DNA from: Lepidodermella squamata | Taxonomy: Eukaryota; Animalia; Gastrotricha | Length of the DNA stretch: 64,000 nt | Direction of reading: 5' to 3' | Assembly: GCA_047495785.1 (NCBI GenBank) | Contig: JBLDXI010000054.1 | Coordinates: 1,488,001 to 1,552,000 of the forward strand | In this document: positions 7,974 through 47,825 of the stretch, piece after piece | Numbering within the stretch: position 1 is the stretch's first letter | Layout: each line of letters starts with the position of its first letter | Notes under the pieces: model-generated | The model's database searches: none | Told to the model about the DNA's origin: nothing | What the model saw: only the letters and a program-made list of their open reading frames with translations | Program-made: the position numbers and the translations under genes

Positions 7974-9578
7974 ATGCACTCGATGCCGTTTGAAACCGCG
8001 GAAAGAATCCAAAAAATGTCCGCCTTCGCCGAAAGCATGTACAACCCGCAGTACATGGACGACTTTGCAATCTCCCACCTGCCTCAGGTTGAACTAAAAC
8101 CCGAAAATATGACCACCCTTCGAAAAATCCAACAACGCGGAACCGACGAAGCGAGCCCCGGAAAATTCCTACTCGCCCGAGTTTTAGAGGTCCACTCTAT
8201 CACGCGAGTCACGGTTGGCTTCACCCTGGACGACCCTGAGGCGAAACACGTCCTGCCGCTCGTATTCATCTCACCCGGCGCTGTTTACCAACGAGGCGAG
8301 TTTGTCCCATTCGATTTCAGCAGCTTCATCGACTCAATCCCCGTTGGATCGATCATCGCCCTAATGAACCCGTGGCTGACTATGTCAAACAAGCTGCAGA
8401 GCCGAAATCCGAATCATTTGGTCGTTCTTGGGAAACATCACCCGCTATTCGATGATGGGAAAATCAAATTCCTATCCCCTGGACCTGGTCGAGCTAGCCT
8501 GAAATCGTTCGATAACATGGCTCCGAAAGACGCTGGTGTCAAATATTTCGCGGCTAAAAATTACCTGATGGCGAAAGAGTGCTTCTCAAAGGCGATTTCA
8601 GCCGCTGAAAATGACGAAATTCGAGGGAAACAATACGCGAATCGAGCTATGGCCTATCTCTGCCTTTCAAAACCGAAAGAAGCGCTGATCGATGCGGAAA
8701 AAGGCCTGGAATTCGACTCGAAAAACGTGAAATTGATATATCGAAAGGCGAAATCTCTCTTCATTCTGGCTCGCTATGACGAATGCGTTGAATTTTTGAA
8801 AAAATTCGAGGAAATTGTTGGCGAAAACAACGATTTGAAAGAATTGCTGGCTCAAGCTGAAATCGCTGCGGTCGAGTCGAAAACTGGAAATTACGATTTT
8901 GAAAAAATTAAGGAGGAATTGAAAAATCATGCAAGTCTCGAAAATCACGCTGAATATTTCGACGAAAATTCGCTTGAAATCGTGAAAAAGAAGGAAAAAT
9001 GCGAAATTCGGGTGAAAAATGGCATTTCGAACGGATCTTTGCTAATGGCTTCAAAAGCGTTTGTTTTCTATGAAAAAGTCGAAAAATTCGAGTGTACCAT
9101 GTGTTCGATGGAGGGTAAACACGACCATCCTGAGGTTATGGTCGAACCTTGGAAGCAGATTGAAACGCTGGCTAGTGCAAAAATTTCGGTTGATGCAGCG
9201 GCGTTTGAAAAGTTCAAACAACTCGGCGATTTTTCCGACTATAAAAAGCCGGAAAATTTCAAAAATGAAGATTTTTCGAGTGATGACGACGATTTGCCGG
9301 ATGATTTCAAAAATCCTGAGCGGAAAATGGCGGGTGAGGATCGTTTCGCGTATGGCGGCCGGGGTGAAATTGAGACGATTTGCCAGCACTGTTTGATGAC
9401 TTCGAAAAATCCGCACAGCAGGAAAAATTACGCTGGAGTTTGGGTCGAACCGTCGCTGATCAAGAAATCGCAGAAATTGGCGGCTAATTGCTCGGTGGAA
9501 TGTTTCGGTAATTTTTGTTTCGTTCGCGCTTCGGAAGATATTAAGCCGGGTGAAAAATTGGTGCTGCGCAAGAAATGA
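7974..9578 (+). CDS. Intronless TPR + SET-like domain protein, 534 aa (SET probably inactive)
   Basis: TPR motifs (GVKYFAAKNYLMAKECFSKAI, YANRAMAYL, IYRKAKSLF). Split SET strands: IRVKNGISNGSLLM ... GVWVEPS ... FVRASEDIKPGEKLV. Confidence 0.85.
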   Translation: MHSMPFETAERIQKMSAFAESMYNPQYMDDFAISHLPQVELKPENMTTLRKIQQRGTDEASPGKFLLARVLEVHSITRVTVGFTLDDPEAKHVLPLVFISPGAVYQRGEFVPFDFSSFIDSIPVGSIIALMNPWLTMSNKLQSRNPNHLVVLGKHHPLFDDGKIKFLSPGPGRASLKSFDNMAPKDAGVKYFAAKNYLMAKECFSKAISAAENDEIRGKQYANRAMAYLCLSKPKEALIDAEKGLEFDSKNVKLIYRKAKSLFILARYDECVEFLKKFEEIVGENNDLKELLAQAEIAAVESKTGNYDFEKIKEELKNHASLENHAEYFDENSLEIVKKKEKCEIRVKNGISNGSLLMASKAFVFYEKVEKFECTMCSMEGKHDHPEVMVEPWKQIETLASAKISVDAAAFEKFKQLGDFSDYKKPENFKNEDFSSDDDDLPDDFKNPERKMAGEDRFAYGGRGEIETICQHCLMTSKNPHSRKNYAGVWVEPSLIKKSQKLAANCSVECFGNFCFVRASEDIKPGEKLVLRKK

Positions 9579-11288
9579 AAATTGCCGAGAAAAAATGGGA
9601 CAAAAACAGTGCCAAAGCCCAAATTGACTGGAAATAATTTTGCAATATTTTGACAATTGCTATAATACTTGATTGTTGGTTATCAATGGTGAAATTTTCG
9701 CATCTTTCAAATTGCTCAATTTTTCACTGTGAAATCCTTTGCTCATCCTTTGCTATTACTCGAGTGCCATAATATTCAATAAAATCGTTATCGCTGCATT
9801 TCTGTATTTTTATAATTTTAAATAATTGTTGATACATGAAGAAAGATTCCTAAAAAGCGATGAAAATGAGGAAAGCAATATTTCTTTTTCCAAGGAAGCT
9901 GTTTGAGATCGATCGAATCGGTTACTTATGGGACACGCTGTGCCTAGTGTTTCGCCATTTTTCAGCAAGGCGTGGAAATTCGAATTTTGCCGGCAGCATC
10001 ATGAACTTTTACAGGTAGACGCGTCGAAGTGAGATTAGTGGCTAAATTTCGTTGGATCCAACCCAACGTGTTCAAGTAAGCCTCCCGCAGCTGAAATCAG
10101 ATCACGCAGCTTTGCGACTCTTCCATAGATCATGGGGGGTCCATGTATGATTTTTTTGAATGATAGAACTGATACTCAGCTATGAGCACGCAAAAAATTA
10201 GACTGATCGGATGCAAATTGAGAAAGTTATTGATTTCAGAAATTTCATTTTGAATTTATTTAGGAGTAGCAATTTTCGCGTACGGATAGGCATCCCTTAA
10301 TTATTATTTAATTCGAACCACCCTTTAGATTGAGGCCGTTGATAAGTTGATTTTGGCCAAAAATTGAAGCTAAAATAATAACGAATTTCAGATTTTTTAA
10401 AATTTTTTTCTAGCACCCTGATTTGAGTCTACTTGTATGTAATTGTATTATTTTCGGTTGAATTCTTGTTCGGTTGCTATTTTTGTCATAATATCCTGAG
10501 TAATTTTGATATGAATTTACTAATTGGAGAAAGCGTGTAGCCTTGCAAATTTCCGTCCATGAGTGAAAGTTGTAGCTAAATTTCGATTAGGAATTTAGCC
10601 AAAATTTGATACTTCTGTTGGAATGAGCGCTATAGTGAAATCATTACCAAATTATTGAATTCAGTACCAAATTATTCCAATTAGTTCCAAATCCCAAATT
10701 TTAAGACCCAGCCTTCAACCCTAACTTAACCCTGACCCTAACTCTAACCAGTTAAATAACGAATGAAATGGTTAGGTATTGAGTTAAATGAAATTTAGTA
10801 CCGGCTTAAGACCGGCGTAATTTTTTCAACCGAATCTCGAACGAGGCGTGATCAAACTGGAATATGTTGTGTCACTTTTAGACAATTCTCGAGGAAAGTT
10901 ATCTAATGGTACTCACGGGGTCTTTACCATGTCATCTTCGGGTTTTGCTTAGCCAGCTTTTGAGGCAGTCTTTCCAGAAATGAGAATTTTCCTCATCATC
11001 AACTCAGATTTCCCCCTTTTTATGGAAGGGGAAGTAAGTAAGGGGGAAGTAATTCAAATTAGCGCACTGGTACAGACTGAGTTCGGCAAACAATGTGAAC
11101 CGGATATATAAGGCACAAGAGACGGAAGTTCATCGCACGGGGTTCAGACGGTTTTCCATGTTTCACGATTTTTCTTTCGGAATCCTGAGTTCTTCCCGCA
11201 GAGTCACGACTTGTTTTCATCCGGATGACGAGACCGTCTATTTGCTCATTTTTTAATATTATCACTTCGCAAATTCTTCAGGTTTAAG

Positions 11289-13913: not shown

Positions 13914-16124
13914 TTAATCACAATTTCTCCGTCGGCTGAAGTCGGTGAAAATCCATAGAAGTTCGATCAAGAGGCTTAAGGCAAGGCAGAGTGCTGCAAC
14001 AGCTACTTGCTGCTTGATAGGATAACGAGAAAGTAGTATGAATATCAGCACGCCAGCTGCTTCAATACTGACAGCGACTGCTATCTCAATTTTCGCGACT
14101 TGAAATGCTTTTTTAACGATGTGCTTGCGCGAAACTTGCCGCAAATGGATCGCCCAGTTGCAAGCTTGTAAAACAGGCAGAAATTGAACGAGTACCATAG
14201 TCCAAACCCAACCAGATCTGCTTTCTGTCATCGAGATACATTTGTTAAGCTTCGTCTCCAATGTTACGTCCATTTCGTAGTCGTAGTAGATGTTGGAAAC
14301 CGTTAAATCGCATCGGGATGGGTCTGCAGCTTGCCAAGCGGCAAATAATGCACAATTGATAGCGAGAATCAGGAGATAAAGCATAAACAAGCTTCCTTGA
14401 GCAGAGGCAAGAATGGCTTTCTCAACCTGCCGTCTAACTTCAGGTCGTTTCGCGATCTGCTGAGTTCGAAGGGAGACATGAAAGAAAAGTCCCATTCTCA
14501 AAATAAGGCTGCTATTGACCAAGGTAAGCCCAACAAAAAACAGGGTTATTCTAAGGTTCCAATGGGTTGAAGGCGAAAATAAGCCGTCTGTGACGTGAGC
14601 TATGGAAGAGATTTGAAGAAGGGCACATCCAATTAACGCCGCGATTTTTAGGAAAGCAGTGTCGATTGAGTCCATCCACCTGAAGTAAAGAGCCGCCATG
14701 CCTATGGTAGCTATAATCGACAATGCTGAGATGAACTGAATCCCTACCGATTCCCCTCCAGTCGGAGCTGCAACGCTGCTGAGAAATCGTCTGGCATCTC
14801 GAGGTGGCTCGCCATTGTCAGTTTTCCAGATACTGTCGCCGGATCGCTTTATTATGGTCCGATTTTCGATCAAGTAAACACGGCTGAAACGTTTCTCAGG
14901 AGTCCAGTAAGTGAGATAAATCGGTAGGCCCTGTAGTATCCCATTATCGTCGTAGTGTAGCCTCGCAACTCTCAAACCACGATAGTCGACCTCCTTTGCG
15001 GCTTGATTAACGGCGCGCGAGATATCGCGTGGCCTGTGTCGATATTGATCCAGCGACGAATTAATCAAATTTAATCGCGTTTCCACTATGTCTAGCGTAA
15101 TGACAGATTGCAGGACACCATCGTGGCACGAATATCGCAATTCGTAAAACGAACCACGTGAGGTGTTCGTAAAAAGGTCAAAATCTGAATCGAACTTTGC
15201 CCGATTATACCCGAAAGACGAATTCTGTGTCGGATCAATATTTTCGTCAAGATTTGAAAGCCATAGCATGTACTTGAGCTGTTCCATTACTATATCGCGA
15301 TTACAGCCGGGGGCGAAAACATGGTTTGGTATTGTAAGAGGATCTAAAACGGAGCCATAAGTCAGGAAAAAGTAGCGACTGCCAGTGATTCCGGCGGAGT
15401 AAGCGTAGCATAGAAAACTTGTGAGCAAAGACACGTTCGATATCAGGACGAGAATAATTCGAACATCCGAGTTTTTCATTGAGTTGATGACATCGAAATC
15501 GAAGCGGCGAAAGGCATCGAACCAAACAACTTCGACTCCCTCGAGGCTGGCCCTTTTCCGGATTAAATCAGCCTCCCTCGCGAATTTAAACGTTTCAGGG
15601 TCGAAAACTATCCCAACCTTGGTCCAGTTGCTCACCTCTCTAATGAACTTCAAATAAGCCCAATGACGTGCTTCGGTAGGTTCGTTCATTAGGAAGTAGT
15701 TCGGAAATCTCTGGCGATCATTCAAGTAGTCGGATGGGCAGCCTAATGAAATTACTGTGAAATTCATGGTGTAGGCCAACAGTCCTAGAGCTTTACAGCC
15801 ATCGTCATTCATAGGGCCTATAACGATAGGGGATGGTAAGAGCCAAGGTCTGTCCTCCATAAATCTCGTGTAGTTGAAAAAAGCATTCTGACCAGGCCTG
15901 GTAGCTGCAGGATGAGTGTCCCCGAATTCCAACTCGACGTTGTAATCTGGCAGAAACCGGTACTGATTATTCGCGTTTCGTTGAGCGATTTGAGCTGCCT
16001 GCATACATTCCGTCATCACACTGGCCGCGGGATTTTTCGGCAGCTGAAAATTGATGAGCATGTGAAGAGTTTTCTGCTTCATTGCAGCTACAGCAGTTAT
16101 CAAAGCTAGAGCTATAAACCTCAT
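13914..16124 (-). CDS. Intronless GABA-B-like class C GPCR
   Basis: Signal peptide MRFIALALITAVAA, FLPDYNVEL, RFPNYF, NWTKVGIV, DVRIILV, WKTDNGEPPRD stalk, then 7 hydrophobic helices. Confidence 0.88.
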   Translation of the reverse strand: MRFIALALITAVAAMKQKTLHMLINFQLPKNPAASVMTECMQAAQIAQRNANNQYRFLPDYNVELEFGDTHPAATRPGQNAFFNYTRFMEDRPWLLPSPIVIGPMNDDGCKALGLLAYTMNFTVISLGCPSDYLNDRQRFPNYFLMNEPTEARHWAYLKFIREVSNWTKVGIVFDPETFKFAREADLIRKRASLEGVEVVWFDAFRRFDFDVINSMKNSDVRIILVLISNVSLLTSFLCYAYSAGITGSRYFFLTYGSVLDPLTIPNHVFAPGCNRDIVMEQLKYMLWLSNLDENIDPTQNSSFGYNRAKFDSDFDLFTNTSRGSFYELRYSCHDGVLQSVITLDIVETRLNLINSSLDQYRHRPRDISRAVNQAAKEVDYRGLRVARLHYDDNGILQGLPIYLTYWTPEKRFSRVYLIENRTIIKRSGDSIWKTDNGEPPRDARRFLSSVAAPTGGESVGIQFISALSIIATIGMAALYFRWMDSIDTAFLKIAALIGCALLQISSIAHVTDGLFSPSTHWNLRITLFFVGLTLVNSSLILRMGLFFHVSLRTQQIAKRPEVRRQVEKAILASAQGSLFMLYLLILAINCALFAAWQAADPSRCDLTVSNIYYDYEMDVTLETKLNKCISMTESRSGWVWTMVLVQFLPVLQACNWAIHLRQVSRKHIVKKAFQVAKIEIAVAVSIEAAGVLIFILLSRYPIKQQVAVAALCLALSLLIELLWIFTDFSRRRNCD

Positions 16125-16477
16125 TTTAAAGTGAAAAAGCACTTATCAGTATTTTTTAACCTAGCCTACTTGCTAGACGCATCAATCAGGTGTTATGGAT
16201 CACCTGACAATCTCATAAATTCTGACCGTTTCATCGCTCTAATTGATAAAAGCAGGTTTAATTAGATTGCGAAATAAGACACTACCCACCTTAATTACTC
16301 AAATTAATAGGGCGTGACGTCTTCAGGTGTAAAAGTAGCGGTCATTTCAGATTTATGACCTCAGTGAGATTCCGTGGCATTATCGCGGGCGGAGCCCCAT
16401 TAGACTAAATCTTCTTGATTAACCACGATTGAGTACGAAGAGATTTCCTAATAAGCTGTATCTGTAAGTATGTACCT

Positions 16478-18892
16478 ATGATCGCAGATATAAGAGCAGT
16501 CTGCGATCATCTTCTCCTCCGATTTCTCAAATTTTCTGTGCTCGTATTCTTCATGATCTGGCTTAAAATGACATTTCTCATGCTCTCTGCATTTGGCTCC
16601 ATTGACTCGACAAAGCCTGTAAAAATGCAGCTGATGGCTTTCATTCCATTTACTGGCAACGATCCGTTCGACGGATCGATTTGCCAGGCTGCTATGCAAG
16701 TAGCTGTGAATGCATTCAATTCCCAAGCTAAACTACTTCCGAACTATGAAATCGTTCCTATCTACGCTGATGAAGGTCCGCTATCTCTCAACATCGCCAA
16801 AACCTTGATATCATTCTCGGGGGATCAGAATTTGGGAGTGAAGGCTCCTATTAGCCTTGGTTCCTATTTCAGCTCTGGATGCCAAAGAGCCGGGCCTATT
16901 TTTCACCACCTTAATTTTGTATTCATCGCAACTGGCTGCGGGGCCCCGAACTTGCTAGACCGGCGATCAATCTACCCTAATGTTTACCGCTCGCGGGTTC
17001 CGACTCTCAACACTGTCTACCTTCGCCTAGCTTTTATAAAAAAATACACAACATGGAGGAAACTTGCGTTGATAACCTACTCGGACAACATTTTTGACGT
17101 GTCGAACTCGCAACTTTTCTATAACATTGCTAAATCAAATGGATTGAATGTTGGTTGGTACGAAGCTGTGCCGGATATCTATAGAGAGACGCTAAAAGCT
17201 CTTAAGGAGACAAATATCCGAATTATCGTGATCGATATGACTTCGGTTGCTATGGTTACAGTTTTCTACTGCAAAACATACGAAATCGGAATAAGAGGCC
17301 CTCGTTATGTCTTTATCGGGAACAACAACGGCTACCTGGATCTCAGCATACCTAGCTCCTATTCCAGCATTCCCAAGGGATGCACAAAAGACATGCTGCT
17401 CGAGCAATATAGAATCACAGTAAGGATAGGGACCTATTTATCCCCGGCTGAGAACTACGGAATGACGGTGTTAGGCTACGATTTGCCCGGATTCGAAAGC
17501 AGACTAGATCTTCTGACTAATAGATCAAGAGTTGCAGATTATCGAACCCGATTTTATTGCCACGATGCAATGCTTCAAAGCTTGCTGACACTGGCCAACG
17601 CCGAAAGCCGCCTTAATTCCGAGGATTTGACCCTCGCTGATCTTGACCGGTTTCCTAACAAAGTAATGCAAGTTGTTAATCAAAGCACTGCGGAGATTGA
17701 TTTCGTTGGGCTGAGAATCGGACGAACTGTTTATTCAAAGCGGCTTGAGCTTGATTATGAATCCCTTTTCCTCGGAACTTTCGACCGAAATACCAGCTCG
17801 GTACAGGTTGTTTCAAGGGTAACGTTAGCCATCAACTCGACAGTTTCGGATTTTGATAAGTACATCTTCCAAGGCAGCAATTCTAAGTTCATATGGCCTG
17901 GGGCAGATTCGGGTGAGTTGCCCCAAGATCTCTGGCAGGAGAGATTTCTAACCCAGGAGACCCCGATTCGGTACACTGTTGTTCTTGCTTCGTTGAGTTT
18001 CGTAATTGTTATCGGTCTTGCTCGATTTGTAGTGAATTTTATCAGTGTTCATAGACAGAGCCAATTTGTATTCAAATACTTACTCGAGTACGAATTGTGG
18101 TTAGCTTTTGCTTGCTTTACTACTAACATCTCTGCTTTAACTTTCGTCTTTGATATCCCGTTCTGCGCTGTGAGAGTTGGCCTTCTATTAGCGGGTCTAT
18201 CCTTACTCCATGGCCAATTATTCGGCGCAGCTCTGCAAATTCATAGCAAAATGAATGAGATTCAGGATATTGAATTATTACGACCTCCGTCTTCAATACG
18301 CCTCTCCGAAAAGAGTCGCCATCGCCATCATAGAGCGCGCTTAAACCATTCAAGTGTCGCTAAATGTACCGTTATATTCCTCCTTCTGAATCTCTGCATT
18401 TTCGAAGCTTGGGTAATCACTCATCCCGAGGAGATGTCGACAGCTCACGTGAGATTGGCCCCTTACTACGTCGAGCTGGAGGACACTATGGTCTACCCAT
18501 CAGCTGTGCTCTGCAAATTTACATCAGGCTTCAGCTGGCCGATTAGCTTCATCGTAATTCACGTATTCGTGATTCTTTTAGCTGTGCTGCTTATTTTCAG
18601 GGCAGCTCATTCGAGCGCGGCTCTTTTCTCGCTCATTAAGAAGCACCGCATGCAACTGATACTAGCTAATTCGTTCACGATCGTAATTGCATCGATCTTG
18701 CTCGTTGCTACCTTGGAGGATCCTGCGGATCGCAATGCAATACTTGGATTTGCCGCACTCGCCCACTCTGCTTCAACGCTAGTCATTTACTGGCTGAGAA
18801 ATGATAAAATCTTCAAGGTAGATGTAAAAAACTACAACCCTTCCGCGACGCAACTCGTGGAATTACAAGTGACTGGTCATGTAGGCAGCTAA
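16478..18892 (+). CDS. Intronless GABA-B-like class C GPCR (true start may be a downstream ATG)
   Basis: LLPNYEIV, YPNVYR, WRKLALI, NIRIIVI, GPRYVFI, WPG..ELPQD stalk and 7TM. Confidence 0.88.
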   Translation: MIADIRAVCDHLLLRFLKFSVLVFFMIWLKMTFLMLSAFGSIDSTKPVKMQLMAFIPFTGNDPFDGSICQAAMQVAVNAFNSQAKLLPNYEIVPIYADEGPLSLNIAKTLISFSGDQNLGVKAPISLGSYFSSGCQRAGPIFHHLNFVFIATGCGAPNLLDRRSIYPNVYRSRVPTLNTVYLRLAFIKKYTTWRKLALITYSDNIFDVSNSQLFYNIAKSNGLNVGWYEAVPDIYRETLKALKETNIRIIVIDMTSVAMVTVFYCKTYEIGIRGPRYVFIGNNNGYLDLSIPSSYSSIPKGCTKDMLLEQYRITVRIGTYLSPAENYGMTVLGYDLPGFESRLDLLTNRSRVADYRTRFYCHDAMLQSLLTLANAESRLNSEDLTLADLDRFPNKVMQVVNQSTAEIDFVGLRIGRTVYSKRLELDYESLFLGTFDRNTSSVQVVSRVTLAINSTVSDFDKYIFQGSNSKFIWPGADSGELPQDLWQERFLTQETPIRYTVVLASLSFVIVIGLARFVVNFISVHRQSQFVFKYLLEYELWLAFACFTTNISALTFVFDIPFCAVRVGLLLAGLSLLHGQLFGAALQIHSKMNEIQDIELLRPPSSIRLSEKSRHRHHRARLNHSSVAKCTVIFLLLNLCIFEAWVITHPEEMSTAHVRLAPYYVELEDTMVYPSAVLCKFTSGFSWPISFIVIHVFVILLAVLLIFRAAHSSAALFSLIKKHRMQLILANSFTIVIASILLVATLEDPADRNAILGFAALAHSASTLVIYWLRNDKIFKVDVKNYNPSATQLVELQVTGHVGS

Positions 18893-20249: not shown

Positions 20250-20464
20250 TTGCGTTTTTTGCTGAATCAAAGTAAAATGACAGTTTTCTCATAAATCTGC
20301 TGAAATCGCAAATATATTATTGAGATATGACTTGTGTCACAAATCATCGGAATGAAACATTGATTCAACGAGCAAACAAAAGAAGATGCAAAACAAACAA
20401 AGCTGCTATACACAAGTCAGCACGAAAGCAAATAATTGCGCATATTCACACACGAAACTTTAAA

Positions 20465-21526
20465 ATGCCCATCAACGGTACAGTAGCCTTGCTTGATTTG
20501 TTACTTGCTACGTGTAACATTGATCCGTTGGTGAACTCGCCGAGTGAGCTACTCGGCCAACCTACAGTTGTTCAGCTGGCATTCGCTGCTGACAGGATGC
20601 TGAAAATTGACGATGTCGAAGAAACAATGTCATTGTCTGCGTTTTTCGGCTTCTTATGGCTTGACAATTGCACACAAGAAAATTCGGCTTATTTCAAAAA
20701 TCAGTCTGGCGATCTCGATGGACTGTTTTTTCTCAAAGGCAACGACAAAATTTGGTGGCCAACGGTCATTCATCGAAATAGCCCGAACAACCCAGCTATG
20801 AGTGGCGATGAAATAAGCCGATCAGTCGCGATCAATATTACATTGGGTGCCTATTCAAACCAGATCTATGGTCCTTTCACTTCATACTGTTCGATGCACT
20901 TCTGGCGATTCCCGTACGACACTCAGGAATGTTGCCTTCAATTAATGCTATTAGCGAATTCCAAGTTTGTGGTGATTGGTGACTTACTCTTCCCGAAAGA
21001 GTCGATAAGTAGTAAGTTAATGCCTGAGGGCTCAGTTTGGCAAGCAGTATCACAAGGAGCTCGACTCGGTGATGGAAACTCATCAGCATTTTTCTGCCTA
21101 ACTCTCAAGCGCGATCCGAGTTATGTGATTTCAAATTTGTTCGCCCCAAGCTTCATTCTCACAATTCTGAGCCTGTGCAGCTTCTTCGTACCAGCCGAAT
21201 GCCCGGATAGAGCTGCCTTCGCGGTCACTATAATGCTAGCAATGTTTGTTCTACAATCAGACATGCTGGCAAATCTGCCCAAGACGAGCGAGCCGATCTT
21301 AGCGACTTATTTCCTGTTTGGTCAGATCGTTTTTCAAATGGCTTGCGCTGTCTACGCGGCTGTGATGTGTTCTTTCATCACGTTGTACCCCAGAACGGCG
21401 GCTGTGAAATTTCGATTCCGAAAGACAATATTTCGTGGTTACCTTGTCGTGGATTTCACGGTATTTATACTATTCCTTGCTGCTATGGTCATTTTTTACG
21501 TGTCAATTTTCTTAATCATCAACTAG
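20465..21526 (+). CDS. Cys-loop ligand-gated ion channel subunit, type A, intronless, 353 aa
   Basis: IWWP, Cys-loop CSMHFWRFPYDTQEC, LKR pre-M1, four TMs, LPKTS M2-M3 loop. ATG chosen by alignment to paralogues. Confidence 0.92.
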   Translation: MPINGTVALLDLLLATCNIDPLVNSPSELLGQPTVVQLAFAADRMLKIDDVEETMSLSAFFGFLWLDNCTQENSAYFKNQSGDLDGLFFLKGNDKIWWPTVIHRNSPNNPAMSGDEISRSVAINITLGAYSNQIYGPFTSYCSMHFWRFPYDTQECCLQLMLLANSKFVVIGDLLFPKESISSKLMPEGSVWQAVSQGARLGDGNSSAFFCLTLKRDPSYVISNLFAPSFILTILSLCSFFVPAECPDRAAFAVTIMLAMFVLQSDMLANLPKTSEPILATYFLFGQIVFQMACAVYAAVMCSFITLYPRTAAVKFRFRKTIFRGYLVVDFTVFILFLAAMVIFYVSIFLIIN

Positions 21527-29080: not shown

Positions 29081-29870
29081 GGAGAAAATTCAGCTTATTT
29101 AAAAAACCAGTCTGGCAATCTCGATACAATGTTTTTCCTCAAAGGCAACGACCGAATTTGGTGGCCGACATTCATTCATCGCAATAGCCCAAACAATCCA
29201 GCTATGAGCGGGGATGAAATAAGCCGATCTGTCTCGATTAATATTACATCAGGTGGCTACGCAAACCAGATATTAGGTCCCTTCATTTCATATTGTTCGA
29301 TGCACTTCTGGGGATTTCCGTACGATACCCAGGAGTGTTGCCTTCAATTCACCCTAGTAGCTTTTCCGAAGTTTGTGGTGATAGGTGGCCTGCTCTTTCC
29401 GAAAAATGCACTAGTCAGCAACTTTATGCCTGAGGGTTCAGATTGGCAAGTGGTTTCCCACGAAGCTCGACTCGGCAAAGATAATGTAACAGCGTTCTTC
29501 TGCTTAACTCTCAAGCATGATCCAAGTTATGTGGTTTCGAATTTGTTCTCGCCAAGCTTCATCCTGACTATTCTCAGCCTGTGCAGCTTCTTCGTACCAG
29601 CCGAATGCCCGAATAGAGCTGCTTTCGCAGTCACAATATTGCTTGCAATGTTCGTTCTGCAGTCCGAAATGCTGGCGAATCTGCCCAAGACAAGCGAGCC
29701 GATCATTGCGACTTACTTTATCTTTGGGCAAATTGTTTTTCAAATGGCTTGTAGTGTTTACGCTGCTGTGATGTGTTCTTTCATCACGTTGTACCCTAAA
29801 ATAGCGGCTGTAAAATTTCGATTTCGACAGACGATATTTCGTAGCTACCTTGTCGTGGATTTCGCGGTAT
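29081..29870 (+). pseudogene. Truncated type A Cys-loop channel
   Basis: Homology starts abruptly at ENSAYLKNQSG, fused to a copy of 26040-26235 (at ~28826-29060), and ends within M4. Confidence 0.85.
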
Positions 29871-30777
29871 TGTATGACAATCGCGAAATGACAACCTAAC
29901 ATGACTTTTAGAAATTCTGACAATCACATTTGCGAAAAGCTAACTATGGAATTTAAAAAACCCCTGCTAGCAAGAGTTTTCTCCTTTCCAGCCTGTTGAG
30001 TTTGAAACTGGATGCCGGATTTAATACGAATGAACGCGTCATCCATAGTGATTTTACTTTTGTGAAATGAAATGAAATGATTTATTTGTTTCTCTCCCTC
30101 GCGACTAAACGTCTATACCCTTTCGGGTTTTGAGGAAGGCGAAGGCAAGACAAACCAAAAGGAAAAATTTAGTCACCCTCCCCCACAGCCGAGAAAATCT
30201 TACTTTTGTTATAAAATTCAAAATCTTCAGTCAAATCCAGTCAACAGTTTTTTCGGAAATTTCGGTTACATTAACTTTTTTACTTTTTTGATATTCGGAA
30301 TGTCATTTTGGAGAGTAGATTGATGAAAAATTCTGCAAATTTCAAGCTTTTATTTGAGACCGATAGCTAGTCGCTCACATCACGGTTCCGTAATTCTGTT
30401 CAAATTATTAAGATTTCAATTATTCCTTTTACAAATTAGCGTAAGCCCCTTTTTGTGCCACTGTAACCTGTCAGAATAGCTTACTAATTGGATGTTAGCA
30501 GAAGTGCTAACTGATGATAATCATACATGGACCTGTCGTTCATCAGATGAACATCAAAGACGCCCGAGAAATATGTACCCAGGCACTACTGTGTGTACCT
30601 CAGGTCAGGCCGGAGGCGTGTTGTCTGAATCCTGAATCCTGAAAATTAATGAGATTAAAACCATGACGAAATGTGATTGTCTTCTGGGGGTCAAATTAGT
30701 CATTTTCTTCATAAAAAGGCGATTGGTTTTGCGATAAGGTGATCATTTTCGGGCAGTTATCCTTCTGATTTTTTCTG

Positions 30778-33594: not shown

Positions 33595-34662
33595 TCAATC
33601 GTACATGATTGTTGCGAGGATTGATAGGTAAAAAATGACCATAGCAACAAGAAATAATAAGAAAACCGCGAAATCCGCGACAAGGTAACCACGACATATT
33701 GTCTTTCGAAATCGAAATTTTACAGCCGCCTTTTTAGGGTACAACGTGATGAAAGAACACATAATTGCAGCGTAGACACTGCAAGCCATTTGAAAAACAA
33801 TTTGTCCAAAGATGAAGTAAGTCGCAATGATCGGCTCGCTTGTCTTGGGCAGATTCGCCAGCATGTCTGATTGTAGAACAAACATTGCCAGCATTATTGT
33901 CACTGCGAAAGCAGCTCTATCCGGGCATTCAGCTGGTACGAAAAAGCTGCACAGGCTCAGAATTGTGAGGATGAAGCTTGGGGCGAACAAATTTGAAATC
34001 ACATAACTCGGATCGCGCTTGAGAGTTAAGCAGAAAAATGGTGATAGGTTTCCACCCCCCAGTCGGGCCTCGTTCGAAATTAGTTGCCAAACTGAGCCCT
34101 CTGGCATTACGTTACTGGGTATAGTCTCTTTAGGGAACTTGACTTCTCCAATCACCACAAACTGGGAATATGCTATTAGCGTTAAATGGACGCAACACTC
34201 CTGAATGTCGTAAGGAAACCGCCAAAAGTGCATGGAGCAATACGAGGTGAAGGGTGCAAATATCTGATTCATATACATGCCCATTGTAACATTGATCAGC
34301 ACCATACGGCCAACCTCGTCGCCATTCATAGCTGGGTTGTTTGGGCTATTGCGATGGATGAAATTTGGCCACCAAACGCGGTCGATGCCTTTGGGAACAT
34401 GCATTGCATCAATATTGCCAGACTGGTTTTTTAAATTTGCCGAATTTTCCAGCGTGCATTTGTCGAACCAAACGAAGCTAAACACGCCAAACAGTGACAT
34501 GGACTCCTCGACCTCGTCGATTTTCAGCACTCTATCAACATAAAAAACAGGGCTGACAGCTGTGGGCTGGCCGAGCAGTTCACTCGGCGAGTTGACCAAA
34601 GGATCGATGTGACACGTTGCGAGCAACAAATCAAGCAAGGCCAATGCACCCTTGTTAGACAT
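33595..34662 (-). CDS. Cys-loop channel subunit, type A, 355 aa
   Basis: CSMHFWRFPYDIQEC, 4 TM, intronless. Confidence 0.92.
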   Translation of the reverse strand: MSNKGALALLDLLLATCHIDPLVNSPSELLGQPTAVSPVFYVDRVLKIDEVEESMSLFGVFSFVWFDKCTLENSANLKNQSGNIDAMHVPKGIDRVWWPNFIHRNSPNNPAMNGDEVGRMVLINVTMGMYMNQIFAPFTSYCSMHFWRFPYDIQECCVHLTLIAYSQFVVIGEVKFPKETIPSNVMPEGSVWQLISNEARLGGGNLSPFFCLTLKRDPSYVISNLFAPSFILTILSLCSFFVPAECPDRAAFAVTIMLAMFVLQSDMLANLPKTSEPIIATYFIFGQIVFQMACSVYAAIMCSFITLYPKKAAVKFRFRKTICRGYLVADFAVFLLFLVAMVIFYLSILATIMYD

Positions 34663-36650: not shown

Positions 36651-37718
36651 TCAAGTGTTAAGAATCTTTGCGAAAATTGAAGAGTAAAAGACGACCAGAA
36701 CAACGAGGAATACTACGAAAACCACGAAATCGATGACCATAAAAGCGCGATATGTAGTCGTTCGAAATTGCCATTTCGCAGTCGCCTGCTCCGGATACAA
36801 CGTGATGAACGAACACATCGCAGCTGCGTAAGCAGTGCAAGCCATTTGGAACTCAACTTGTCCAAAGATGAAGTAAGTCGCAATGATTGGCTCGCTTGTC
36901 TTGGGCAAATTCGCTAGCATTTCGGAATGCAGAACGAACATTGCAAGCATTATTGTGACAGCGAAAGCAGCTCTATCCGGGCATTCGGCTGGCAAAAAGA
37001 AGCTGCACAGGATCAGGATTGTCAGGATGAAGCTTGGCGCGAACAGATTATTAACCACGTAACTTGGATCGCGCTTAAGAGTTAAGCAAAAATAAGCTGT
37101 TACGTTATCCTCGCCTAATCGAGATGTTTGTGATGTTAGTTTCCAAAGTGAGCTTTCAGGCATAGCGTTAGCTGATGTTAGATTCATCATTAATGACACA
37201 CCATCTATCACTACATAGCGTCGATTACCTAACAGCGTTAGTTGGATACAACATTCCTGCGTGTCGAACGGGAATCGCCAGAAGTGCATCCGGCAATACG
37301 AGCTGAGAGGTCCGAATATTTGATTCACGTAAGTTCCATTTGATACATGGACAGCAACAGATCTGCTCATTTCATCACCTTTCATCGCTGGGTTGTTCGG
37401 GCTATTTCGGTGAATGAAGGTTGGCCACCAAATGCGATCGTTGCCATTGGGTAGGAACATAGTTTTAACGTGGCCCGATTTCTTTTTCAAATACGCCGAT
37501 ATGTTCGAGGTGCAGGCATCGGACCATATGAAGTCAAGCACGGCAAATACGGAGAAAGCCTCTTCGACATCGTCGATTTTCAGCACCCTATCGATGGCTA
37601 GTATCACACTGACATTGGTCGCTTTTTCGTTTATTTCGTTGGGAGAGTTGACTAGTGGATCAATCGGACACGTTGCAAGCAGCAGATCAAGCAGTGCAAT
37701 AGTTCCCTTGTTGTACAT
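36651..37718 (-). CDS. Cys-loop channel subunit, type B, 355 aa
   Basis: CRMHFWRFPFDTQEC, 4 TM, intronless. Confidence 0.92.
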   Translation of the reverse strand: MYNKGTIALLDLLLATCPIDPLVNSPNEINEKATNVSVILAIDRVLKIDDVEEAFSVFAVLDFIWSDACTSNISAYLKKKSGHVKTMFLPNGNDRIWWPTFIHRNSPNNPAMKGDEMSRSVAVHVSNGTYVNQIFGPLSSYCRMHFWRFPFDTQECCIQLTLLGNRRYVVIDGVSLMMNLTSANAMPESSLWKLTSQTSRLGEDNVTAYFCLTLKRDPSYVVNNLFAPSFILTILILCSFFLPAECPDRAAFAVTIMLAMFVLHSEMLANLPKTSEPIIATYFIFGQVEFQMACTAYAAAMCSFITLYPEQATAKWQFRTTTYRAFMVIDFVVFVVFLVVLVVFYSSIFAKILNT

Positions 37719-39167: not shown

Positions 39168-40235
39168 TCAGGTCTGGATGATGCTTGAGAAAATTGAAAA
39201 GTAAAAAATTACCATAGCAGCGAGGAATAAAAGAAAAACCGCGAAATCCACGACAAGGTAACCACGAAATGTAGTCGTCCGGAATTGAAGTAGTGCAGCC
39301 GCCTTTCTGGGGTACAACGTAATGAAAGAACACATCCCAGCAGCGTAGACAGTGCAAGCCATTTGAAAAATAATTTGCCCAAAGAGTAAATAAGTTGCAA
39401 TGATTGGCTTGCTTGTCTTCGGCAGATTCGCCAGCATTTCGGACTGCAAAACGAACATTGCAAGCATCAGTGTCACTGCGAAAGCAGCTCTATCGGGGTG
39501 GTTTGCTGGTATGAAGAAGCTGCACAGACTCAGAATGGTCAGGATGAAGCTTGGCGCGAACCAATTCGAAACCACATAGCTGGGATCACGCTTGAGAGTG
39601 AAACAAAAGAAGGCGGAGAGGTTTTCATGGCCAAGTCGTGCTTCTTGCGATAATAGTCGCCAAACTGAGCTCTCGGGCATGAAGTGACTGGATATAACAT
39701 TTTTCGGGAACGCCACGTCACCAATCACCACATACCTGGAGAAAGCTACTAGGGTGAATTCAAGGCAGCATTCCTGAGCGTCGTACGGGAATCGCCAGAA
39801 GTGCATCGAACAATATGAAGTGAAGGGACCTAATATCTGGTTTATATAGGTACCCGAGGCAAAATCGATTATGACCGTTCGACCCATTACATCCCCACTC
39901 ATAGATGGATTATTTGGACTATTGCTATGAATGAATGTCGGCCACCACATTTGGTCGTTGCCTTTGGGAAAAAACAATACATCTAAATTTCCAGACTGGT
40001 TTTTAAAATAAGCCGAATTTTCTAGCGTGCAGCCGTCTTCCCAAATAAAGCTGACACCGCCAAACAATGACATTGTTTCCTCGACATCGTCGACTTTCAG
40101 CATCCTATCAGCAAAGATAGTGAGGTTGACAACTGTAGGCTTGCCGAGTAGCTCACTGGGCGACATGACCCGCGGATCAATGTAACACGTAGCGAGCAGC
40201 AATTCAAGCAAGGCTACTGTACCGTTTCCGGGCAT
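39168..40235 (-). CDS. Cys-loop channel subunit, type A, 355 aa
   Basis: CSMHFWRFPYDAQEC, 4 TM. Confidence 0.92.
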   Translation of the reverse strand: MPGNGTVALLELLLATCYIDPRVMSPSELLGKPTVVNLTIFADRMLKVDDVEETMSLFGGVSFIWEDGCTLENSAYFKNQSGNLDVLFFPKGNDQMWWPTFIHSNSPNNPSMSGDVMGRTVIIDFASGTYINQILGPFTSYCSMHFWRFPYDAQECCLEFTLVAFSRYVVIGDVAFPKNVISSHFMPESSVWRLLSQEARLGHENLSAFFCFTLKRDPSYVVSNWFAPSFILTILSLCSFFIPANHPDRAAFAVTLMLAMFVLQSEMLANLPKTSKPIIATYLLFGQIIFQMACTVYAAGMCSFITLYPRKAAALLQFRTTTFRGYLVVDFAVFLLFLAAMVIFYFSIFSSIIQT

Positions 40236-40683: not shown

Positions 40684-41751
40684 TCACGAGTAAATGATAT
40701 TTACAAAAATCGAAGAGTAGAAAACGACCAAAACAACGAGGAATACTGTAAACACCATGAAATCGATGACTAGAAAAGCGCGGAATGTAGCCGTTCGAAA
40801 TCGCCACTTCGCAATCGCCTGTTCGGGATACAGCGTGATGAACGAACAAACAACAGCCGCGTAGACTGTACAAGCCATTTGAAATACAGTTTGTCCAAAG
40901 ATGAAGTAGGTTGAAATGATCGGCTCGCTTGTCTTTGGCAGATTCGCCTGCATTTCGGACTGCAAAACGAACATTGCCAGCATTATTGTGACAGCGAAAG
41001 CAGCTCTATCCGGGCATTCGGCTGGCAAAAAGAAGCTACACAAGCTGAGAATTGTTAGGATGAAACTTGGGGCGAACAGATTATTTATCACGTAGCTCGG
41101 ATCGCGCTTGAGTGTTAAGCGGAATAAAGCTGTTTGGTTATCCTTGCCGATTAGATAATTGTGGGATTTTAGTTTCCAAAGTGAGCTTTCTGGCATAGCG
41201 TCGGCTGCTGTTTGATCTAGTGGAAAAATCACACTCTCTAGTACTACATACTTTGGAAGACCCAACAGCATCAGTTTGATGAAACACTCCTGGGTGTCGA
41301 ACGGGAATCGCCAGAAATGCATCGGGCAATACGAGTGGAGAGGTCCGAATACTTGGTTCACGTAGGACCCAGCAGATACAGATACAACAACTGACCTACT
41401 TATTGCTTCTCCCTTCATAGCTGGGTTATCTGGGCTATTTCGGTGAATGAATGTAGGCCACCAAATGCGATCGTTCCCATTGGGTAGGAACATTTGTTTA
41501 ACATTGCCCGCCCGCTGTATCAAGGCAGCTGAGTTTTTCGAGGTGCATGAATCATACCAAATGAAGTTGATCATGCTAAATACTGAAAATGTCTCCTCGA
41601 CATCATCGATTTCCAGCACCCTATCAATGAAAAGCATCACGGTAACACCAGTAGGTTTTCCGTATGTTTCGCTGGGCGAGTTGACCAGCGGATCAATGTT
41701 ACACGTTGCGAGCAGCAGATCAAGCAAGGCGATAGTTCCATTGTTAGGCAT
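40684..41751 (-). CDS. Cys-loop channel subunit, type B, 355 aa
   Basis: CPMHFWRFPFDTQEC, 4 TM. Confidence 0.92.
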   Translation of the reverse strand: MPNNGTIALLDLLLATCNIDPLVNSPSETYGKPTGVTVMLFIDRVLEIDDVEETFSVFSMINFIWYDSCTSKNSAALIQRAGNVKQMFLPNGNDRIWWPTFIHRNSPDNPAMKGEAISRSVVVSVSAGSYVNQVFGPLHSYCPMHFWRFPFDTQECFIKLMLLGLPKYVVLESVIFPLDQTAADAMPESSLWKLKSHNYLIGKDNQTALFRLTLKRDPSYVINNLFAPSFILTILSLCSFFLPAECPDRAAFAVTIMLAMFVLQSEMQANLPKTSEPIISTYFIFGQTVFQMACTVYAAVVCSFITLYPEQAIAKWRFRTATFRAFLVIDFMVFTVFLVVLVVFYSSIFVNIIYS

Positions 41752-44844: not shown

Positions 44845-45912
44845 TCAAGAGTTAATGATCTTTACGAAAATTGAAGAGTAGAAAACGACCAAAACAACGA
44901 GAAATACTACAAACACGACGAAATCGATGACCAGAAAAGCGCGAAATGTAGCCGTTCGAAATCGCCACTTCGCAGTCGCCTGTTCGGGATACAGCGTGAT
45001 GAATGAACACATGACAGCCGCGTAGACGGTACAAGCCATTTGAAACACAACTTGTCCAAAGATGAAGTAAGTCGCAATGATCGGCTCGCTTGTCTTGGGC
45101 AGATTCGCCTGCATTTCAGACTGCAGAACGAACATTGCAAGCATTAGAGTGGCTGCGAAAGCAGCTCTGTCTGGGCATTCTGCTGGCAAAAAGAAGCTAC
45201 ACAGGCTGAGTATTGTAAGGATGAAACTAGGTGCGAACAAATTATTAATCACATAACTCGGATCGCGCTTGATAGTTAAGCAGAAGAATGCTGTTGCGTT
45301 TTTCGGGCCAACTCGAGTTGTATATGATTCTAGTTTCCAAAGTGAGCTTCCTGGCATAGCATCGGCTATTGTTTCCTCCACTGGAAATACCAAAGTCCCT
45401 AGTACAACATACTGAGAAATTCCCAACAGCATTATTTTGATACAACACTCCTGGGTGTCGAACGGGAATCGCCAAAAATGCATCGGGCAATACGAGCTGA
45501 GAGGGCCGTATATTTGATTCGTATAAAATCCCTCTTGTACAAGCACCATAACAGATCTACTTATTGCCTCTCCCTTCATAGCTGGGTTATCTGGGCTATT
45601 TCGGTGAATGAAAGTCGGCCACCAAATGCGATCGTTGCCATTGGGTAGGAACATTTGTTTAACATTGCCCGACTGCTGTATCAAGTCAGCTGAGTTGTTA
45701 GACGTGCATGCATCTTCCCAAGCAAAGACGACCAAGGCAAATACTGAGAAAACCTCTTCGACATCGTCGATTTTCAGCACTCTATCAATGGCAAGTACCA
45801 CAGTGATATTGGTCGGTTTGTCGTAGATTTCGCTAGGCGAGTTGACCAGTGGATCTATGTGACACGTTGCAAGCAGCAAATCAAGCAAGGCAATAGTTCC
45901 CTTGTTAGGCAT
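44845..45912 (-). CDS. Cys-loop channel subunit, type B, 355 aa
   Basis: CPMHFWRFPFDTQEC, 4 TM. ATG chosen by alignment to paralogues. Confidence 0.92.
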   Translation of the reverse strand: MPNKGTIALLDLLLATCHIDPLVNSPSEIYDKPTNITVVLAIDRVLKIDDVEEVFSVFALVVFAWEDACTSNNSADLIQQSGNVKQMFLPNGNDRIWWPTFIHRNSPDNPAMKGEAISRSVMVLVQEGFYTNQIYGPLSSYCPMHFWRFPFDTQECCIKIMLLGISQYVVLGTLVFPVEETIADAMPGSSLWKLESYTTRVGPKNATAFFCLTIKRDPSYVINNLFAPSFILTILSLCSFFLPAECPDRAAFAATLMLAMFVLQSEMQANLPKTSEPIIATYFIFGQVVFQMACTVYAAVMCSFITLYPEQATAKWRFRTATFRAFLVIDFVVFVVFLVVLVVFYSSIFVKIINS

Positions 45913-46091
45913 GTCTACGTTCCTATATACAGCCTGAAGTTGAAATGCGACAGCAATTTCTGCATAACTGTGTTTGCTATGCTCCATGTTATTTGCTTTG
46001 TAAATAAACATTTCGATCGGATGTTGGATCAATTTCGATTTTAATCACTTTGAGATCTCAACCATTATCATGTGGTGCTGTGTGTGTTTTT

Positions 46092-47825
46092 TCATAAATT
46101 TGTATAGCGGTGCATGCGAAGTGGCCGATCTAAGCTGTTGTTCGGCCCCACTTGCGGGTACATTACCGTTGGTCTAGGCTGCACAATCTTCCCTGGTGTA
46201 GCTGGGGGTGGTACTGAAAATGCAGATTGGCGTTGATGGAGAACGGATGGCGGGGCTGCAGACGGGAATTTGAGTGGGTAGTTTGAAGATAAGGGCCTCG
46301 GGGTTAGTTCCGCCGCTGAATCATCTAAAGGAATATTCAAATAATTCAAAAATTCAGAAATTCGAAAAAAAACTTTAAAAATTATAATAAATTTTAATTT
46401 TTAATTGGAAAAAGTCAGATTAAAAAAATGAAAAATTTATTTTTCAATTTGAAAATTCAATTTGAAAATTGAAATTCGATTTTTTCAAATAAATCTTTAC
46501 CTGGTTTCCATAGAGCACTTCGGCTTCGAGCAGGTAAAGACCCAGTTGCTGAATCCTGTTCTAGCTGCAAAGGTGGGACATATGCCGGCCTCTGAGGCGG
46601 CATTTGTTGTTTCTTCACGTACACAGGCTTAATATAGCCCGAAGAACTCGAAGGTTGTGTTTGGAAACCCCGCGGAAGGCTCTCCTGAAAAAATGCGCTC
46701 ATCGGCTGAGGAATCGGTATTTCCTCCTCGATAACAACGGGCGACTTATTTTCCTTGCCAGATTTTGATTTTCCTGATTTTTGCTTAACAGCTGCTGATT
46801 TTTTAGGTATTATTGGCGAATGTTTCGGCGTTTGTGTAGCAGCTTCAGGGTTATTAAGATTGAGCTGCAGCCGATGTTGTTCGAATTTTAGAGCGATCCA
46901 AGCTAAAAGAAATCATCAATTAAATTTGAAAATAATTCGAATTTCTCGAATAATTTATAGTTAATTTAAATAAAAATTTGGAATAACTCGATTTTTCTGC
47001 TTACAAGGAGGGATTGGCGTTGTATCTTGAATTTCTTTCTCCAACAGCCTAAAAATTAGAAATGTTGACATAATTAGTACTAAAAATGTCTCTACTTAAA
47101 TATACCCAGCGTCTTTAACGAATTCGTGAAAATCGCCGTCTGACATCGAATCCGCTGTCAGCCATTTGAAGAACGATTCGGAGGAAAGCAGAGCATATTG
47201 CCTGGCACCAGCTAAAAATTTCTCCGCTTTTTCGCCATATTTCAGCTTCATTTGAATAGCTATTAATATCGCTGATACAGCCGCAGCACAGCCACTAAAA
47301 ATTCTCTGAAATTCCGCTAAAAAAAATAAGAAAATTCAAGATTTCAAGAATCAAGAAAATTTTGAAAATTTTGAAAATTTTAATTTCGAAATTTTAATTT
47401 TAATTAAAAAAAATTTCGAGTCTCTAACCGTTATCTTTAGCAGCGACAAAAACCATGGCTACAGAGCATTGAATCAGCATAAGAGGTACAAAGAACAGAA
47501 ACGAGTCGAGTTGCCGGTAGACACTCGCCGAATACGTGAAAGTCGCACGTTTCTCGCGAAATCGAACGTGCATAAAAGCTAGCAAGGTCGGCCTATCGCC
47601 TGTCCGGCTCGAAATTGCAACTGGCGGCAAATCGTTTGGCGGCTCAGGTGTTGATGATCCAGATCGATTCGAATTTACTACATGCGGCTCGAGAACTTTT
47701 ATCGAATCGATTGCTAACATGGGGGAAATACTCCGTCGAGCGGTATTTTCGGCGCTTTTAATATCGTCATCCTCAGGATCGGGGGAGGCGAGAAATTTTA
47801 CCTCTGGCTTTGGAGAGACTGACAT
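46092..47825 (-). CDS. SLATT-like 2TM protein; exons 47825-47429, 47316-47106, 47048-47005, 46902-46501, 46324-46092 (~428 aa)
   Basis: All four GT-AG introns are phase-consistent. Core reads ASVYRQLDSFLFFVPLMLIQCSVAMV..IFSGCAAAVSAILIAIQMKLKYGEKAEKFLAGARQYALL...EIQDTTPIPP, with disordered flanks. Confidence 0.75.

Follow-up and report, generated by a model that had tools for sequence, protein, structure and literature searches.

A spliced two-transmembrane gene of the gastrotrich Lepidodermella squamata with a remote resemblance to SLATT effectors

Introduction

Could a family of membrane effectors known from bacterial conflict systems have a relative among the genes of a gastrotrich? The question is raised by a gene on the minus strand (positions 46092-47825) of a 64,000-nucleotide (nt) stretch of DNA from Lepidodermella squamata, which we call the window (GenBank assembly GCA_047495785.1, contig JBLDXI010000054.1, positions 1,488,001 to 1,552,000 of the forward strand). 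An earlier note, prepared from the letters alone, had described an effector gene of the SLATT type (SMODS- and SLOG-associating, with two transmembrane (TM) helices). SLATT proteins are predicted pore-forming effectors, terminal or accessory, in CBASS, DRT/UG, RADAR and GTPase-centred systems (PMC9226505, PMC7159879). Our analysis makes it likely that this is a real, expressed and vertically inherited animal gene, whose product is a stand-alone and highly divergent two-TM member of the SLATT superfamily.

SLATT-type proteins have also been described in algae, giant viruses and polinton-like viruses (bioRxiv 10.64898/2026.09.30.755861; 10.1101/2025.10.09.676808; PMC8502044), and the family DUF4231 (PF14015) is reported to be enriched in bacterial defence islands (PMC10799925). 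A literature search on SLATT in animals, the results of which were cluttered by the surname Slattery, returned no report.

Results

Gene structure and expression

The gene runs from an ATG at 47825 to a stop codon at 46092-46094, and these coordinates are exact. Five exons and four introns make up the coding region (Table 1); the exons total 1287 nt, corresponding to 428 codons plus stop. All four introns have GT..AG at both borders, and the GC content of the introns is 0.15-0.21 vs 0.43-0.53 in the exons. A hidden Markov model (HMM) of the family, A1, finds the gene as a single copy within the window. The earlier count of three exons holds for the conserved core, which occupies exons 1-3 and the first dozen codons of exon 4, and fails for the whole gene with its five exons; the four introns that were also claimed fit the whole gene.

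Only two stretches of the protein reach the hydropathy level of a membrane helix, one at the end of exon 1 (residues 109-127) and one at the start of exon 2 (135-153), as expected from the two TM helices proposed before. The strings named at the same time are also present: SASVY ahead of TM1 and, beyond TM2, both AIQMKLKYGEKAEKFLAGARQYALL (exon 2) and TPIPP (exon 3). Match positions 2-57 of HMM A1 fall on exon 1 and positions 58-137 on exon 2. TM1 and TM2 are joined by a loop of about 10 residues and have Arg/Lys-rich flanks, from which both termini should be cytosolic according to the positive-inside rule. The F, P, L and Q of TM1 are kept in alignments A4 and A7. Both ends of the 428-residue protein are rich in Pro, Ser, Gln and Lys, over about 75 residues at the N-terminus and about 200 at the C-terminus, and Pfam searches with single exons identified no additional domain.

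The only two public runs found were aligned to the locus, X2 with genomic data and X1 with complementary DNA (cDNA). The label of X1 gives RNA as no more than a guess, but the loose ends of its contigs carry the SMART template-switch adaptor, which identifies this run as cDNA. These contigs are restricted to exons, with zero depth in introns 1 and 4, and one of them splices 46324 to 46501, which is exactly intron 4. The gene is transcribed and real. Two haplotypes are seen in X2, at a depth equal to that of the flanks. Within the coding sequence they differ at 23 places, 16 of them synonymous and 7 non-synonymous, and every one falls in a tail. One X2 haplotype contig has a 2-nt deletion at 46218 in exon 5 (depth 85.7 of 190.7). 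The protein of this allele would end differently, with 12 other residues in place of the last 40 of the tail; the cDNA contig represents the undeleted form.

An ortholog and paralogs in a second animal

Searches with the window gene were run exon by exon, with two relatives, P0001 and P0003, standing in for a full-length protein. The 69-residue piece of exon 2 gave eight matches when phmmer was run exhaustively against 1.8 billion protein representatives. One of them is P0001, an ortholog of 354 amino acids (aa) that matches at E 4e-22 with 65% identity over exon 2. The cores of the two proteins are 64-68% identical and their tails have diverged freely; the tail of exon 1 scores 88 bits against P0001, and from exon 4 only residues 1-25 match it. 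The gene for P0001 lies at 8001-9065 of locus L001, on a 13.8-kb metagenome contig that also carries split DENN, SBF2 and metallo-beta-lactamase genes, which indicate that the contig is eukaryotic. A 20-residue "insert" between the TM helices of P0001 proved to be an unspliced in-frame intron of 60 nt (GTAAGA...TTTCAG), so the database entry is 20 residues too long.

Two further proteins, P0006 and P0017, are exons of a paralog found on L007, L008 and L009. L008 (paralog at 8686-9619) and L001 come from one sample, ERZ27332993; the second, metagenome-derived animal has two paralogs, with very different tails and one of them nearly without an N-terminal tail. That its source is an animal follows from the RPB1 gene on L007, which scores 2600 bits against mammalian RPB1 vs 1600-1765 bits against fungal RPB1.

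Intron 1 is found at the identical codon and in the identical phase in all three genes compared, namely the window gene, the L001 gene and the L008 paralog. This sharing shows long residence in the lineage and argues against contamination or recent insertion. The second intron of the L008 paralog lies three codons upstream of the position of intron 3 of the window gene. In P0001 the genomic open reading frame (ORF) is uninterrupted across the region of introns 2 and 3, where it reads ...FVKDTGQLEKEIQDTSLVPPSWISS...; the G made by splicing exon 2 to exon 3 and the S made by splicing exon 3 to exon 4 equal the residues of P0001, which validates both introns.

Tandem-module relatives from plankton

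The same exhaustive search detected P0003, P0004, P0007 and P0008 at E-values of 3e-8 to 3e-4, and P0014, P0018, P0019 and P0020 were identified as further relatives. These are intronless proteins without names from the TARA, ENA and Logan environmental assemblies. All contain two tandem copies of the module except the shorter P0020, and P0003, P0004, P0007, P0008, P0018 and P0019 (loci L002-L006 and L010-L015) are 381-546 aa long. Exons 1 and 2 of the window gene each match both tandem modules in collinear order, and the tail of exon 1 likewise has a collinear match to the modules. When a profile built from the animal proteins only was aligned by hhalign to one built from the plankton proteins only, the probability was 99.5% with an E-value of 3e-23 over 145 columns. 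At the level of sequence, these comparisons establish the homology of the animal protein to the plankton tandem-module family.

Several features are shared along the whole module: RF..K...Y before TM1, F..PLL.LQ in TM1, SA..IA.Q in TM2, the helices with K(L)(R/K).GE..E(K/Q)(F/Y), Y..L.S(D/E)..F and F(L/V)...Q..EK, and the P..P.W motif. Animal and plankton proteins alike retain the Gln in TM1 (LQ) and the one that closes TM2 (IA.Q). Identity between the two groups is only 25-40%, and their architecture differs, with two modules per chain and no introns in the plankton proteins as opposed to one module, four introns and long tails in the animal protein. The closest neighbours of the module by language-model features and by fold are Nucleocytoviricota clusters.

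P0002 and P0005 were rejected as relatives, since each is built of repeats and reaches its score by adding up many weak ones. P0005, a mucin-like protein of Saccoglossus and the sole named match among the eight, is such an artefact. A word-index search with exon 1 gave no match, and word searches returned only environmental proteins without names.

Similarity to SLATT profiles

Exon 2 alone matches the NCBIfam model SLATT_4 at an E-value of 4.4e-5 with 23.4 bits, where the curated cutoff is 55, and this was its sole meaningful match. The register of the match is consistent among relatives: residues 4-59 of exon 2 correspond to profile positions 57-114, residues 105-198 of P0001 to positions 56-145, and residues 17-87 of P0015 to positions 56-126. 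P0001 scores 21-23.5 bits against the same model (E 4e-5 to 2e-4). Rows of the module alignment match SLATT_4 in nine of eleven cases, SLATT_1 in six and SLATT_fungal in three. SLATT_1 is the first or second match of P0003, P0004, P0007, P0014 and P0018, at E 9e-5 to 2.5e-3. The Pfam family DUF4231 is matched by P0003 with 27.0 bits, above its gathering score of 24.7, over both TM helices and the helix that precedes them; the window protein gives no match to this family.

The only PADLOC models returned were those of a reverse-transcriptase-associated SLATT protein and of a CBASS effector with two TM helices, and among the neighbours of exon 2 by language-model features, 7 of 30 belong to clusters bearing SLATT_4. 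Overall, SLATT-type models were the only families to recur across four HMM libraries in a consistent register. No named metazoan family was matched in the exhaustive phmmer search of 1.8 billion proteins or in family scans, which agrees with the earlier statement that this is not a standard animal domain. A PDB sequence search with the family profile gave only noise, above E 0.1, and tblastn of the modules against plasmids and phages gave noise or no match.

Predicted fold

An AlphaFold2 model of a homologous plankton module has a predicted local distance difference test (pLDDT) score of 90.8 and shows a four-helix hairpin arrangement, with helices at residues 3-53, 57-84, 86-123 and 131-152. 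The full-length fold of the tandem protein P0003 was predicted with a mean pLDDT of 63.8 and a predicted TM-score of 0.54. A trait of SLATT proteins, the two-TM hairpin with cytosolic helices on both sides, is present as judged from hydropathy and from the model of the homologous module. The predicted fold of the module is not diagnostic for SLATT.

Genomic neighbourhood

Seven or more Cys-loop channel genes, apparently intronless, lie in the window together with two genes for ANF receptors. Such a gene content fits an animal genome and bears out the earlier description of the genome as animal-type and of the gene as intron-containing. Four tandem copies of 355 aa are among the channel genes. 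Pfam confirmed four of the seven by their Neur_chan_LBD and Neur_chan_memb domains, and the others were assigned from equal ORF length. A gene for a TPR protein is a further neighbour. No terminal repeats, mobile-element borders, viral hallmark genes or tRNA genes were seen around the locus.

On the same strand, the next channel ORF starts only 60 nt after the stop codon of the SLATT-like gene, across window positions 46033-46091. The first listed start codon of that ORF is TTG, and the interval leaves scant space for a 3' untranslated region and a promoter.

Table 1. Features of the SLATT-like gene and ORFs of neighbouring genes, in window positions
Feature	Position	Strand	Remarks
Exon 1	47429..47825	-	ATG; residues 1-132 and first base of codon 133; N-terminal low-complexity tail, basic pre-TM helix, TM1
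TM1	47445..47501	-	residues 109-127; Kyte-Doolittle 19-residue mean 2.43; conserved F..PL(M/L)..Q
Intron 1	47317..47428	-	112 nt, phase 1, GT..AG, GC 0.16; interrupts hairpin between TM1 and TM2
Exon 2	47106..47316	-	TM2 and two post-TM helices; 69-aa piece
TM2	47255..47311	-	residues 135-153; Kyte-Doolittle mean 1.74; conserved SA..IA.Q
Intron 2	47049..47105	-	57 nt, phase 2; junction residue G as in P0001; not in L001, L008
Exon 3	47005..47048	-	44 nt, LLEKEIQDTTPIPP; aligns with EKEIQDT motif of P0001 and P0006
Intron 3	46903..47004	-	102 nt, phase 1; junction residue S is the S of "PPSWI" in P0001
Exon 4	46501..46902	-	first ~12 codons (WIALKFEQHRLQ) close the conserved core; remainder Pro/Ser/Gln/Lys-rich tail
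Intron 4	46325..46500	-	176 nt, phase 1; CT..AC ends in cDNA contig, GT..AG on minus strand
Exon 5	46092..46324	-	C-terminal tail and stop; X1 contig spans 46197-46326
SLATT-like core	46865..47600	-	residues ~76-230: pre-TM helix, TM1, short loop, TM2, two helices, P..P.W(I/L)
ANF_receptor ORF	13914-16142	-	742 aa; ANF_receptor ligand-binding domain; divergent pair with next
ANF_receptor ORF	16478-18892	+	804 aa; ANF_receptor ligand-binding domain
Cys-loop channel ORF	20327-21526	+	single ORF
Cys-loop channel ORF	29129-29899	+	single ORF
Cys-loop channel ORF	33595-34662	-	single ORF
Cys-loop channel ORF	36651-37718	-	single ORF
Cys-loop channel ORF	39168-40235	-	single ORF
Cys-loop channel ORF	40684-41751	-	single ORF
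Cys-loop channel ORF	44845-46032	-	single ORF; adjoins SLATT-like gene

Discussion

Membership of the animal protein in the SLATT superfamily is probable in our view, as a resemblance backed by several consistent weak tests and not demonstrated; the sequence comparisons support a remote relationship only. Of the earlier assignment to SLATT, the recurring and consistent matches below threshold remain, while no curated threshold is passed by the animal protein. Another possibility is a two-TM protein of no SLATT ancestry, restricted to some eukaryotic lineages, these invertebrates and some plankton organisms among them. It would serve an everyday purpose, for instance in organising organelle membranes, as a trafficking adaptor or as a channel subunit, and would match the profiles through the composition of its hydrophobic helices and a generic amphipathic helix. 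A number of results do weigh against SLATT membership. All SLATT scores apart from the marginal DUF4231 match are under the curated cutoffs, which neither the window protein, searched as single exons, nor P0001 reaches, and this favours a protein without SLATT ancestry. So does the finding of VMA21, DUF5392 and DUF3754, which are small-TM families, at comparably weak E-values. Pfam searches with single exons gave no match at E-values up to 10, and a language-model search with the tail of exon 1 gave nothing usable. The stretch that matches SLATT includes a hydrophobic helix, which could inflate the score; the Pfam and NCBIfam models probably share seed alignments and hence are not independent; and the DUF4231 match bears on SLATT through the Pfam clan that would unite the two. 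Structure searches returned no SLATT-named match either: the Atlas fold search gave unnamed viral and bacterial clusters at TM-scores of at most 0.56 (the best row is an unnamed Nucleocytoviricota cluster at 0.54), Foldseek against the PDB gave nothing below E 0.001, and the VIA wide search gave generic helical matches whose Z, at most 10.4, is too low to be meaningful for helical bundles. Neither within the protein nor among the genes next to it is there a SMODS, SLOG, TIR or reverse-transcriptase partner; in eukaryotes, the order of genes says little for or against. This lack of conflict-system context, with neuronal-type channels as neighbours, also suits an ordinary membrane protein. What speaks against chance similarity is that SLATT-type models alone recur, in many independent sequences and in the same register in all four libraries, that the match runs about 40 residues past the TM helix into the soluble helix, and that the E-values near 1e-5 already include the composition correction of HMMER. 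A protein of no SLATT ancestry is in our judgement the less probable explanation, with an appreciable minority chance of being correct.

The words "effector" and "horizontally acquired" in the earlier note are interpretation. No member turned up in annotated animal proteomes, so the distribution of the family looks patchy, and this fits either an old transfer from a protist or virus or wide loss. The conserved intron and the paralogs of the second animal are likewise compatible with ancient retention and with an old transfer. A recent foreign insertion (a giant virus, a polinton-like element or transposon cargo) or contamination of the assembly would be suggested by the known occurrence of SLATT genes as cargo of polinton-like and giant viruses and by the Nucleocytoviricota clusters nearest to the module. 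Such an origin is extremely improbable: the gene has four spliceosomal introns in the AT-rich style of the host, both paralogs of the second animal have kept intron 1, and a host channel gene begins 60 nt away, with neither terminal repeats nor viral hallmark genes nearby. The presence of both haplotypes at the depth of the flanks, the cDNA and the absence of element borders effectively exclude contamination or a recent viral insertion. Very improbable as well is a decaying or non-functional copy that is transcribed by chance. The 2-nt deletion in one haplotype contig could be taken as a sign of decay, but the reading frame is intact over five exons, the cDNA contig corresponds to the undeleted allele, synonymous differences between haplotypes outnumber non-synonymous ones, and the core has been kept close to that of the ortholog while the tails diverged freely. 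We thus return to a vertically inherited animal gene with SLATT-type similarity, which would represent a new and divergent branch, in animals, of a superfamily already known; the interpretation in the earlier note is partly supported.

Compared with known systems, the protein shares the two-TM hairpin and flanking helices with bacterial SLATT proteins (NF033632 SLATT_4 and NF033634 SLATT_1; PF18186 and PF18181), which are also its best recurring profile matches. Bacterial SLATT genes are found in operons with signal-generating enzymes or fused to them, whereas the window gene has introns, resides in a eukaryotic genome and has no partner at its locus. The window protein further differs by about 275 residues of disordered tails and by scores far below the curated cutoffs. 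Members from outside bacteria, like the window protein, stand alone: Gephyrocapsa huxleyi EMIHUDRAFT_256646, the SLATT_4 genes of Tetraselmis polinton-like viruses, the genes of giant viruses, and SLATT_fungal. Standard domain models suffice to recognise these eukaryotic and viral proteins, whose sources are protists, fungi and viruses; the window protein, in contrast, is animal, spliced and too divergent for those models.

By analogy with SLATT proteins, for which conserved polar residues in or at the TM helices are the proposed channel lining, a working scheme can be drawn for the gene product. A long pre-TM helix would continue directly into TM1, and TM2 would be followed by two helices that pack back on the pre-TM helix, with predicted disordered tails of about 75 aa (N-terminal) and 200 aa (C-terminal) flanking this core. 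Several hairpins may come together laterally as an oligomer and so make a regulated pore or channel. The Pro and Gln of TM1, together with the small-residue face and terminal Gln of TM2, could form its lining or hold it together by packing. Gating might fall to the helical bundle in the cytosol, and the tails could provide sites for regulation, docking or partner binding. The covalently doubled modules of the plankton relatives hint at a working unit of at least two hairpins. Pore formation is possible, with the balance of our judgement somewhat on the side of doubt, and a role in defence or cell death is unlikely. Less likely still is the specific proposal that stand-alone SLATT-type pore formers serve small invertebrates as effectors of innate immunity or regulated cell death, triggered via the tails or the helical bundle by a signal of a kind not so far known from animals.

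In bacterial anti-phage systems, few predicted membrane effectors are as common as SLATT proteins, yet their mechanism has barely been studied. An expressed, intron-bearing, multi-copy animal family would offer a tractable eukaryotic entry point for studies of localisation, oligomerisation and membrane perforation. The analysis also brings out an unannotated marine-plankton family of tandem-module relatives. An animal SLATT relative widens the list of candidate immune modules shared from prokaryotes to animals; if it were indeed an immune effector, it would be another bacterial abortive-infection module conserved into Metazoa, beside cGAS-STING, TIR and gasdermin. If it is a housekeeping membrane protein instead, it would still represent a new eukaryotic branch of the superfamily.

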